Of a DNA stretch of 64,000 nucleotides, positions 17,086 through 20,398 are shown piece after piece. Where the stretch lies: positions 62,001 to 126,000 of IMG/VR virus record IMGVR_UViG_3300035698_035310. The stretch is one strand, 5' to 3'. Under the pieces are notes generated by a model. That model made no database searches. It had not been told where the DNA came from and saw only the letters and a program-made list of their open reading frames with translations. Positions within the stretch are counted from its first letter, which is position 1, and every line of letters starts with the position of its first letter. The position numbers and the translations under genes are program-made.

Positions 17086-17152
17086 TCTATTGACATCTCC
17101 GCACATTTATGTTATATTGGAATCATTATTAACACAAAGAAAGGATAATATC

Positions 17153-17590
17153 ATGTTGAATAAACTGTCCGCTGCAACCATCCAAGCACGTAAAGATAAA
17201 AACGGAGACGCTAAATTATTGGTTACGTTTCTCTCCGAAGTTCGAATGCGTGCCAAAGATGATGGCAATCGTGAAGTGACTGACACTGATATCGTTAAAG
17301 TTGCGCAAAAATTCATGAAATCAGCAAAAGAAACAGTAGGCATTCTTCAAAAAGACGATAGCCGACCAGATGCCCTTACAGCCGCACTACGTGAAATCGA
17401 AGTGCTTGATGCGTATATTCCTACACTTATGGATGAAGACGCTACACGGGCTGCTGTAGCCGCTGCAATCGAAGCAACTGGCGCTACCGATATGTCTGAT
17501 ATGGGTAGAATTATGGGTGAATTGAAAAAATCACACGGCGTAACCATTAATATGGGTCTTGCTTCCGGTATTTTGAAAACGTCATTCTAA
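17153..17590 (+). CDS. GatB/YqeY domain protein
   Basis: ARKDK...EIEVLDAYIP...DMGRIMGELK; own promoter TTGACA(17090)-N17-TATATT; start moved to the ATG after AAGGA. Confidence 0.9.
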   Translation: MLNKLSAATIQARKDKNGDAKLLVTFLSEVRMRAKDDGNREVTDTDIVKVAQKFMKSAKETVGILQKDDSRPDALTAALREIEVLDAYIPTLMDEDATRAAVAAAIEATGATDMSDMGRIMGELKKSHGVTINMGLASGILKTSF

Positions 17591-18447: not shown

Positions 18448-18528
18448 GCTGGTAACGCATAGTGGGGGTGCAGCGTGCTCATAACGCGCCGACGAAAGTC
18501 CGGGTTGGTTCGATTCCAACTATCAGTA
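18448..18528 (+). tRNA. tRNA with CAT anticodon (Met or Ile2), long variable arm, no encoded CCA
   Basis: Acceptor GCTGGTA/TATCAGT; D stem GCAT/GTGC; anticodon arm GCGTG-CTCATAA-CGCGC; variable GAC-GAAA-GTC; T arm GTTGG-TTCGATT-CCAAC; terminator-like GTTGGC-ttta-GCCGAC+T run at ~18542-18567. Confidence 0.85.
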
Positions 18529-18548
18529 CATATAAGAAATGGTTGGCT

Positions 18549-19229
18549 TTAGCCGACTATTTTTTTGACTTCAATAAAAGCACTTTCTGGTGAGAAATAA
18601 CGATCTTCAAATATGACTACATTCCATCCATTTTCTTTGAATAGTTTTTGTTTGATTCGGTCTCTATTTTGAACTTGTTTTAAACTATGCACCAAGCCTA
18701 CCATTTCTTTATAATGCCATGGGCCATTCCATAGGATTGCTATTTTATGATCATTTAGTATAATGTCTGCGTCCCATCCATCTACTAAATGTTTATTGTG
18801 GTCTACGTTGTTGTATTTTTGATGACATAAATCATATAATGCCATTTCATCTTTACTTCGCAAACATCGTTTTTGTGCGGATATTTTGCCGCCTATAAGA
18901 CCACCTTTTTTGCCTGCTGCACGTAGTCTATTATTGAAACAACTTGTAGAACAAGTTTTGCGTTTTCTATTTTTCGTTGGATGGTTTTTTGACGGTGTGT
19001 TATAAAACTTGACACCACAACTATTACACTCGCACCATATTATTGGCGAGTAATCACCATCGATGCCGTTATATTTAAGAACGGATAAACGTGTTTTATT
19101 TTTACTGTGTTCTGAACGTTTTCTATTTTTGTTGTTGAATGTCGCGGCACATTGGCGGCTACAATACTTGCGTCTATGATCGTTTGTTTCAAACTCATTT
19201 CCACATTGTTCACATTTTTTGATTTTCAT
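18549..19229 (-). CDS. homing-endonuclease-like protein (Zn-finger repeats + PD-(D/E)XK/Vsr-like domain)
   Basis: CEQCGNEF..YCSRQC, CNSCG..TCSTSC; SKDE...WDADI...AILWNGPWHY...D..K...GWNV. Confidence 0.75.
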   Translation of the reverse strand: MKIKKCEQCGNEFETNDHRRKYCSRQCAATFNNKNRKRSEHSKNKTRLSVLKYNGIDGDYSPIIWCECNSCGVKFYNTPSKNHPTKNRKRKTCSTSCFNNRLRAAGKKGGLIGGKISAQKRCLRSKDEMALYDLCHQKYNNVDHNKHLVDGWDADIILNDHKIAILWNGPWHYKEMVGLVHSLKQVQNRDRIKQKLFKENGWNVVIFEDRYFSPESAFIEVKKIVG

Positions 19230-19265
19230 TTTGACTTACCCTAGTTAAACAGTTATAAATAATGC

Positions 19266-19328
19266 AGCGGGACAGTCTGTCACCCTAGTCAGATTTCCTA
19301 TTTGTTCGAAGCATTTAGGATTACCGCT
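19266..19328 (+). ncRNA. candidate ~63-nt three-way-junction small RNA
   Basis: Promoter TTGACT(19231)-N17-TATAAA(TA); stems AGCGG/CCGCT, AGTCTG/CAGATT, TCCTA/TAGGA; G-U pairs favour the + strand. Confidence 0.5.
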
Positions 19329-19340
19329 ATTAGTATTTAT

Positions 19341-20138
19341 TCAAGTGAATATTTTAAATGCAGGATTTTTTTGTATATTTTCCATCCTTTTTTCTGCTAT
19401 TTCTATATATTTTTCTTCTAAGTCTATACCAATGAAAGACCGATTGTTTTTGAGGCAAGCTACGCCTGTTGTTCCGCTACCCATGAATGGGTCTAATACT
19501 ACGCCTTGTTCCGGTGATAACAGTTTGATCAACCATGATGCTAAATTTTCTGGATATTGCGCTGGATGTGTATTAAATTTGTCTTTGTTAGATTCATGTG
19601 TCCCGACTTCGACGTAATCTTTGCATCTCGCGATTCCTGATTTGGCGGTGCTTACGCTATCGATATATTCATTAACGCCTTTCACTGATTCCATGCCTAT
19701 TCTATCCGAAACCACACCATTCGCTTTAGGATCGCAATAGCTACGCTGATCTAATGAAAACCAATGTATGCTTTCCCAACTTCTTCTAGGGCGATAGTTG
19801 CTACCTAATGGTGCAGATGTAGGTTTAATCCATATCAATTCTTCACACTCGCGCCAACCATCTTCACGTATTGCTAGTCTCATTTTTAATGTATAATCAC
19901 TGATTTGACCTTCTTTGATATGTGGTCTAATCACGATTGCCACATTACCGGCTGGTTTAAGAATTCGTTTGACTTGTTGCATCCATTTTACAGTCCATTC
20001 AGGGTAATCGTGTTCATTGATTCCGTTGTATAATCCATCGCGTTGTTCGGCATACGGTGGTGAAGTTAACACCAAGTCTACAGAATTATCTTCTATATTT
20101 GTTATTTGTTCTAATAAATCACCTTTAAATATAATCAA
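19341..20138 (-). CDS. DNA methyltransferase, beta class (N4-cytosine type)
   Basis: DLVLTSPPY catalytic motif before HPAQYP and VLDPFMGSGTT SAM motif; likely TTG start at 20138 (GGAG SD, ATAAATA upstream); ORF track start 20180. Confidence 0.92.
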   Translation of the reverse strand: MIIFKGDLLEQITNIEDNSVDLVLTSPPYAEQRDGLYNGINEHDYPEWTVKWMQQVKRILKPAGNVAIVIRPHIKEGQISDYTLKMRLAIREDGWRECEELIWIKPTSAPLGSNYRPRRSWESIHWFSLDQRSYCDPKANGVVSDRIGMESVKGVNEYIDSVSTAKSGIARCKDYVEVGTHESNKDKFNTHPAQYPENLASWLIKLLSPEQGVVLDPFMGSGTTGVACLKNNRSFIGIDLEEKYIEIAEKRMENIQKNPAFKIFT

Positions 20139-20398
20139 TTTTAGCACTCCAATAAAATAATTTCCTATTGTATTTATCATTATTAAATACGGTGTTTATT
20201 ATATCAATATGTATATATATCAAATGGTTAGACCCTTGCGCAAAAATTCAATTTCATCATTTAGTTAGTTTTTGATTTTATGCGCAACCATGATTTTTGA
20301 AAATAATTAAAAACAATGCTTGACAATATATAATAATGGATATATGGTGTATATTATATAAATCCAATAATTGAAACTATACAATGAGGTATTAAAAA

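Follow-up and report, generated by a model that had tools for sequence, protein, structure and literature searches.

A widespread phage family of three-way-junction RNAs with loops that match the start regions of homing endonuclease genes

Introduction

Homing endonuclease genes are the commonest selfish elements in large phages, and we know of only a few cases, all T-even, in which restraint of their expression is understood. Related logic appears in other phages and mobile elements. The C4 RNA of phages P1 and P7 and the CI RNA of P4 are small structured RNAs whose loops pair with short repeats over ribosome-binding sites (RBSs); C4, which controls an antirepressor operon, is cut from its target's own transcript, and its loop and target co-vary between related phages. 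In IS10 (RNA-OUT/RNA-IN) and in type I antisense systems such as SymR/SymE, an RNA from a facing promoter occludes the translation start, and for RNA-OUT and SymR the complementarity arises from physical overlap of the genes.

In the T-even homing endonuclease genes I-TevI, I-TevII, I-TevIII and segB, and in Aeh1 mobE, the RBS is sequestered by RNA structures; T4 messages initiated at upstream promoters stay translationally silent, and translation proceeds from late messages whose start lies past the structure (PMC2988022). A 2010 review regarded the regulation of free-standing endonuclease genes as an open area (PMC2988022). An antisense RNA, CfrI, linked to the endonuclease F-CphI in cyanophage S-PM2, has also been described (Millard et al. 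2010, ISME J; as cited in PMC10690425).

The RNA described here, from a giant phage, resembles the T-even structures in that a phage RNA structure is predicted to hide the Shine–Dalgarno (SD) sequence of a homing endonuclease gene, and one of two layouts in its family (class B, below) runs, as theirs does, from a promoter through the RNA and a TATAAAT-like box to the SD. The T-even structures, however, are simple, unrelated local hairpins with the SD inside, whereas here a conserved three-way-junction scaffold with an anti-SD loop recurs in many phages and beside many nuclease families; the arrangement for T4-type sequestration in cis is found in class B members and not at the locus studied first, where the RNA occupies the opposite strand. 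With C4 and CI the RNA shares predicted loop-to-RBS pairing and loop–target co-variation, but unlike C4 it is divergent from its target, tied to nuclease genes and without an Rfam match at E ≤ 10. RNA-OUT and SymR, too, are small antisense RNAs, and they hold down a gene that belongs to a mobile element or encodes a toxic nuclease-like protein; the contact proposed here, however, is made through an evolved copy of the start region that stands apart from it, in a loop, on a scaffold that is also used in cis. CfrI is likewise antisense and associated with a homing endonuclease gene of a phage; it is said to be a long RNA overlapping that gene, and is not known to form a conserved three-way junction or to dedicate a loop to the SD. 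The logic is thus known from T-even RBS occlusion, C4 and RNA-OUT, while the RNA, with a different architecture and no Rfam match, is a member of none of these families.

Results

The window, as we call the whole 64,000-nt stretch that was analysed, comprises bases 62001–126000 of a 359-kb IMG/VR virus record, the genome of a giant phage from a salt lake with 32 tRNA genes. Salt-lake metagenome runs contain the identical sequence; the runs found for this salt-lake sample and its sisters are all of DNA and, being identical, supply no variants. Almost all genes in the window lie on the + strand; the exception is a two-gene − strand island encoding a methyltransferase and a nuclease-like protein, which are separated by the 111-nt gap that holds the RNA locus. 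The nuclease gene, the predicted target of regulation (18549..19229, −; 226 aa), matches the PHROG families of HNH and intron-encoded nucleases. Upstream of the RNA locus on the same strand, an N6/N4 DNA methyltransferase gene (19341..20180, −) provides context; in other phages it lies outside the RNA/nuclease module. Neither megablast nor blastn found close DNA relatives among deposited phages, and a search of IMG/VR for synteny via neighbouring proteins returned nothing.

The nuclease was originally read as a zinc-finger protein with a PD-(D/E)XK domain, and structure prediction agrees: two N-terminal Zn ribbons precede a C-terminal Vsr-like PD-(D/E)XK domain (residues ~96–225), modelled by AlphaFold with pLDDT above 85 and matched by Foldseek, with probability 1.0, to 1vsr (E = 1.2e-3), to 3r3p (I-Bth0305I; E = 4.6e-3) and to V.NaeI (1.8e-5). 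On these models the protein is free-standing and homing-endonuclease-like, with a Vsr-type (I-Bth0305I-like) fold. Its homologues sit in phage tRNA arrays, and in the window a tRNA-Met(CAU) gene (18448..18529, +) is convergent with it, 19 nt from its stop codon. Other phages have this neighbour too, and it may be a flank of the homing site for the nuclease gene.

Several features of this neighbourhood deserve mention in their own right. The Vsr-like gene is repeatedly convergent on tRNA-Met(CAU), in the window and on contigs L004, L005, L007, L011, L012, L013 and L021, with a 3′ end that often abuts or overlaps the tRNA gene; in several phages the nuclease ORF enters the complement of the tRNA T arm, producing C-terminal '...GFEP...' tails, and several of the adjoining tRNA-Met genes are unusually long, at 82–93 nt. 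A gene for a YqeY/GatB-like protein (window 17090–17590, +) adjoins the tRNA-Met gene, and a TilS-like (PF01171) protein is encoded nearby in a relative (L024:116-1036), so that with a ThrRS-like gene and the 32 tRNAs the phage's translation-related genes form a sizeable set. ARAGORN also reports tRNAs with anticodon CUA, the amber suppressor type, at G000:C1:28369-28446 and 221822-221895 (both outside the window) and at L024:9456-9531. Because the genome has tRNA(CUA) genes we checked for stop-codon recoding; ORF statistics gave no sign of TAG recoding, with 59 of 490 long ORFs ending in TAG.

On the + strand of the gap lies a 63-nt three-way-junction RNA (19266..19328, +), delimited by its fold, by covariance-model matches and by pair counts. 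Helix P1 (19266-70/19324-28, AGCGG/CCGCT) leads through J12 (GAC, 19271-73) into P2 (19274-79/19290-95, AGTCTG/CAGATT), which is capped by the 10-nt loop L2 (19280-89, TCACCCTAGT), with its anti-SD part at 19282-89; P3 follows (19296-19304/19312-20, TCCTA(TTTG)/(CA TT)TAGGA) with loop L3 (19305-11), and J31 (UUA, 19321-23) returns to P1. This closed fold is found where the original prediction had placed it. Its energy, −19.9 kcal/mol (z = −3.15), is matched by 1 of 200 shuffles, whereas the − strand of the same region folds no better than shuffles (z = −0.94). As was also first noted, no + strand reading frame follows the RNA: the only ORFs there, of 39 and 90 codons, are both antisense inside the methyltransferase gene.

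A promoter-like site (19231..19261, +) precedes the RNA, with a −35 element TTGACT (19231-19236), a 17-nt spacer and a −10 element TATAAA that sits inside TATAAATA (19254-19261), placing the predicted start near 19266. It had been read as a sigma70 and a late-type promoter at once. The first half of this reading fits the genome, in which sigma70-type promoters, this one among them, occur about 3 times above chance and are oriented with genes; the second does not clearly extend to the genome, where 23% of the 57 copies of TATAAATA lie 0–60 nt upstream of a gene vs 1–21% for words of the same composition. A search for an intrinsic terminator at the RNA locus gave no clean candidate. Bordering the RNA gene on its 3′ side, the nuclease strand has a AATAAATA box (19334..19341, −) that may be the nuclease promoter, the nuclease leader then being the complement of the RNA; if this NATAAATA box is indeed a promoter, the RNA would also be fully antisense to that leader. 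Alternatively, the box belongs to the RNA, as an AU-rich 3′ end signal (UAUUUAU). We also examined a further helix, P0, that would join the two ATAAATA boxes, and discarded it, since what is conserved in the boxes is their sequence and not their pairing.

Homology to this region was traced through the methyltransferase, whose 84%-identical homologue led to contig L024, with the same order of methyltransferase, gap and nuclease. The intergenic gap is 89% identical between the two and the fold 92%, compared with 75% for the nuclease, 80.5% for the methyltransferase and 49% for the next (divergent) intergenic region. Both promoter hexamers and both copies of an 8-mer shared by L2 and the nuclease start region are unchanged, whereas the promoter spacer differs, and changes within the fold are confined to two U.U mismatches in P3, which become G.U and A-U, and to replacement of the TTCGAAG loop. 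That the RNA is better conserved than its flanking genes and the next intergenic region suggests, from sequence comparison, that its fold is under selection. The exact 18-mer of L2/P2 had no match in IMG/VR. Identity within the nuclease gene is itself mosaic, with 44–70% in the middle (18850–19150, the Zn-ribbon linker region) and 86–96% at both ends and in the RNA gene, which points to recombination or to fast change in the part that binds DNA.

The element has no match in Rfam 15 at the gathering score, and at E ≤ 10 the search proposed at the outset, covering the window and L007, L043, L056, L030 and L001, returned only the flanking tRNAs. These results bear on whether the RNA might be a degenerate tRNA or tRNA-like RNA, or a Y or vault-type RNA, derived from a tRNA array and without a part in nuclease regulation. 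Members of the family do lie inside phage tRNA arrays, oriented as the tRNAs are, and the P3 loop of the window copy, G-TTCGAAG-C, resembles a T-loop, a likeness on which the original prediction had speculated. That likeness is already lost in the closest relative, L024, where TTCGAA has become TTGGTG, and P3 loops vary freely across the family. ARAGORN finds only the tRNA-Met in the window, the Rfam models for tRNA, Y RNA and others find nothing at E ≤ 10, and the shape is foreign to a tRNA, with no D arm, a P1 of 5 bp, an L2 of 10 nt and 3 nt between P3 and P1; the co-variation of loop and target described below would also go unexplained. With no Rfam match and no conservation of TTCGAAG, we reject a tRNA, Y RNA or vault RNA identity, and give the wider idea next to no credence. 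As a separate observation, L007:2690-2740 (−), about 30 nt downstream of the RNA there, holds a piece resembling a tRNA 3′ half (GTAGG-TTCGATT-CCTAC, ACTCGCT, TCCA) for which the matching 5′ half is absent.

A covariance model (R1) was built from the window and L024 sequences and run on loci encoding nuclease homologues of 35–45% identity; a second model (R2) yielded 14 distinct members beside homologues of the window nuclease. R1 scores the window copy at 99 bits and R2 at 81.5 bits, and matches to both models fall only just upstream of the nuclease ORF, on the opposite strand, in 13 lineages. As about 13 lineages have the RNA among roughly 160 loci of the window's nuclease family, it is not obligatory for that family. 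One homologue without the three-way junction, on L011, has upstream of it, on the opposite strand, CAT-TTGACT-N17-TATAAT and then a simple hairpin (L011:2680-2763, −), perhaps another small RNA that occupies this position.

We also surveyed IMG/VR blind to proteins, with a sequence pattern combining the conserved core and one common P1. Within the 80 pattern-matching loci listed, 52 matches pass R2, 34 of them distinct, and the RNA occurs two or three times on some contigs. On contigs of cellular genomes R2 is passed by 3 of 80 pattern-matching loci; the pattern therefore does not by itself yield model matches, and the family is essentially viral. R2 gave no credible match in T4, T5, KVP40, phage G or S-PM2, the last returning only an 18-bit match inside a CDS, nor did the RNA turn up in Lak-C1, the sole deposited phage found with the nuclease. 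The RNA family is widespread in phages, has no Rfam 15 match and is new for phage annotation; a limited check of the literature found no earlier description of it.

Conservation of the structure in homologues, a check set beforehand, is pronounced. Across the 14 members, pairing is retained in 97.7% of alignment cells, with compensatory changes at 17 of 20 pairs; for the independent members from IMG/VR the values are 96.3% and 16 of 20. These alignments are fitted to the model, which favours pairing, yet the stems differ completely in sequence between lineages; none of 500 shuffles reaches the observed pairing values, and slid controls pair in about 40% of cells. Model-based alignments were used because MAFFT mis-registered P2 and P3. 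The invariant parts are GGGACAG (P1/J12/P2), UUAC or UAAC (J31/P1) and a G.U at the second pair of P2, present in 10 of 13 and 21 of 32 sequences. On the other strand this G.U would be an A.C mismatch, and therefore the functional strand is the window's +, as G-U pairs had been taken to indicate from the single sequence.

What, then, might L2 contact? The loop is predicted to be 81–88% unpaired, and its anti-SD part, ACCCTAGT, occurs exactly twice in the 64 kb, at 19282 within the loop and at 19238 upstream of the nuclease, the repeat from which the original prediction set out. Taken alone this repeat is weak, two or more matches arising in 7 of 100 shuffles. The complement of the upstream copy is the predicted target of L2, ACUAGGGU (19238..19245, −) on the nuclease mRNA; it is, as claimed, the SD region of that gene, as it contains the SD (AGGG) and ends 9 nt before the AUG at 19229. 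The duplex of L2 with the start region has a predicted energy of −12.9 kcal/mol (8 bp) vs −6.1 ± 2.2 for shuffled loops, 5 of 1000 of which do as well. Duplex energies for the whole RNA (own start regions −16.9 vs foreign −15.1) are dominated by long interior loops, and for this reason that test was replaced by exact-word and loop-only tests. At 8 bp the contact between L2 and SD is short, which counts against the pairing model, and we know of no chaperone for it.

Evidence for the contact comes from its change across lineages. In nine independent lineages of the nuclease family L2 differs, and each version recurs in the start region of its own nuclease gene. The shared words are ACCCTAGT, CTCTAGC, CTCCAAG, TAATCTGT, AAACCTCA, ACCTGTA, GTTGTTACCTT and TCCGTA, and in the ninth lineage the match is GTaTCCG, a 7-mer with one mismatch. 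The L2 word, of 6–11 nt, recurs 13–26 nt upstream of the RNA, over the nuclease SD; in two lineages it matches codons 3–5 instead. With one representative per lineage, the match sum for a gene's own loop is 66 vs 39.1 ± 2.4 (maximum 50) for derangements, none of which, among 133,496, reaches the observed value. That the loop tracks the RBS, as foreseen from one genome, is thus seen across the nuclease family and again in 18 members found without any protein as reference.

Those 18 members form class A of the IMG/VR survey and have the window's layout, in which the nuclease gene is divergent from the RNA and L2 matches its start region: 17 of the 18 have a divergent ORF that starts 19–35 nt upstream (once 68 nt), and matching of L2 to the start region there sums to 124 vs 76.8 ± 4.3, a value reached in 0 of 7,374 permutations. 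A (c/t)ATAAATA-like box stands 4–7 nt before P1 in nearly all class A members, and ATTTAT directly follows the RNA in 15 of 18, as it also does in members near the window's nuclease family. The remaining 16 members, class B, have a short L2 and a strong TTGACA-N17-TATAAT promoter that puts the start at P1. In most, a gene on the same strand follows after ~17–40 nt, and it is the P3 loop that is complementary to sequence overlapping the downstream SD (106 vs 66.3 ± 3.9; 0 of 7,459 permutations); many also have a TATAAAT-like box between RNA and SD. Crossed combinations of loop and target between the two classes gave no signal. A variant arrangement occurs at L161:2140-2345, where a tRNA-Met, the RNA 8 nt later and the nuclease gene all lie on one strand; here TATAAATA overlaps the 3′ strand of P1, and the 6-nt L2 is complementary to the leader ~45 nt before the AUG, not to the SD.

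Since class B members are cis leaders, one may ask whether in the window, too, the functional structure belongs to the − strand, as a leader or inter-cistronic element of the methyltransferase–nuclease transcript that acts in cis on translation or stops transcription. Both flanking genes are on that strand, so the region is probably transcribed that way as well, and the AATAAATA box lies on it just upstream. We nevertheless regard this reading as very improbable: besides the poor − strand fold and the A.C mismatch that would replace the conserved G.U, the strand-specific covariance model in class A always matches the strand opposite the nuclease, and no terminator-like site was found at the locus. 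Moreover, loop and SD region on one transcript would be identical, not complementary, so no pairing in cis is possible. A class A RNA, encoded on the opposite strand, would have to work on the nuclease mRNA in trans.

The association is not confined to one nuclease. A second copy of the RNA in the same genome, outside the window (L189:1501-1564, equivalent to G000:C1:160199-160262, +; an R2 match), is divergent from a gene for a GIY-YIG/NUMOD3 homing endonuclease (L189:738-1460, −) that is unrelated to the window nuclease, and lies 27 nt upstream of the ThrRS-like gene (L189:1591-2808, +). Its L2 shares TTCCTTGGC with the SD region of the GIY-YIG/NUMOD3 gene; none of the IMG/VR homologues of this endonuclease has the RNA. 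Neighbours in the survey include HNH (L297, L291), GIY-YIG (L269, L316, L260), DUF559/Vsr-like (L263), DUF7487 (L302, L285, L278, L329, L296, L272, L264) and NUMOD3 (L306) proteins, as well as a TnpB (IS605 OrfB/Cas12f-like; L278:252-1505, −) with a class B member upstream. The P3 loop of this member complements sequence beside the SD of the TnpB gene; the RNA occurs three times on L278. Linked nucleases span at least four unrelated folds.

Tight linkage to nuclease genes, one of them TnpB, and an invariant core that suggests a bound factor could point instead to an RNA that serves the nuclease as partner or guide, in the way omega RNAs serve TnpB and IscB, and does not regulate its mRNA. The diversity of folds makes such a role highly unlikely, as do the small size of the RNA, its position 5′ of or divergent from the gene, and variable loops complementary to the RBS of the linked gene itself, whether in cis or in trans. 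The two 8-mers might also be read as DNA operators for a protein, for instance a nuclease that represses its own promoter or that of the RNA. I-TevI binds an operator overlapping its own promoter (PMC2988022), and one 8-mer does lie between the −35 and −10 elements of the + strand promoter. We consider operators extremely unlikely: one copy always sits in a hairpin loop, and compensatory changes preserve that hairpin; even close homologues of one nuclease have different words, and the repeated word accompanies four unrelated nuclease folds; and in two lineages the target lies in codons 3–5, not in a promoter spacer.

Finally, the RNA and tRNA-Met could be landmarks for homing, the similarity of loop and start region being a by-product of insertion or duplication rather than a regulatory contact. 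In many phages the nuclease gene does lie between a convergent tRNA-Met and the RNA, and in L161 the RNA follows tRNA-Met within 8 nt on the same strand, resembling an uninterrupted site. But the shared word is confined to the loop, with dissimilar flanks; it differs from lineage to lineage, always matches its own gene and covers the SD or the first codons; and the second copy adjoins GIY-YIG and ThrRS genes with no tRNA nearby. As a substitute for pairing the landmark idea is improbable, and it may be an addition to pairing.

Discussion

The reading we favour, with a probability of roughly 0.72, is that of a scaffold RNA whose anti-SD loop represses translation of a homing endonuclease, acting in trans in the window. 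An RNA of ~63 nt would start at or near 19266 on the + strand, from a sigma70-type promoter overlapping the nuclease start region, and fold into a three-way junction in which the conserved core, GGGACAG ... UUACC, holds two variable hairpins. Single-stranded L2, ACCCUAGU, would pair with ACUAGGGU on the mRNA of the divergent Vsr-like endonuclease, covering the SD, blocking 30S binding and possibly triggering decay, so that expression of a DNA-cutting selfish gene would be kept low or delayed. In class A generally, the RNA would be divergent from the nuclease gene and use L2 as a trans-acting loop against the start region; in class B it would form the 5′ leader of the nuclease mRNA and hide the SD in cis with its P3 loop. 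The structure, its strand, the family, its association with nuclease genes and the co-variation of loop and target come directly from comparative genomics; we infer that the RNA is transcribed, where it ends, that the direction of its effect is repression, and its timing. A further point counts against the proposal: if the AATAAATA box is the nuclease promoter, a separate contact between loop and start region is left without an explanation. 'Antitoxin', the term first attached to the RNA, is a label by analogy only.

More tentatively, the invariant core could dock a dedicated factor, such as the ribosome, an RNase or a protein of phage or host origin, making the RNA a portable, reprogrammable 'anti-SD display' module, an extension that we find doubtful. 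If it were true, homing endonuclease and TnpB genes would carry the module along or recruit it, any invading nuclease gene could be tamed by retuning 6–11 loop bases, and the family would represent a general RNA-based domestication of selfish nuclease genes, with cis and trans modes.

New here is a widespread RNA family that accompanies selfish nuclease genes and is used in two ways, in cis and in trans. As a conserved element that can be searched for, it marks homing endonuclease control in many uncultivated phages, adds an RNA family to phage annotation and flags as functional the small intergenic regions beside homing endonuclease genes. One scaffold serves both modes across at least four nuclease folds, and offers a natural, compact means of presenting a short, programmable anti-SD loop.
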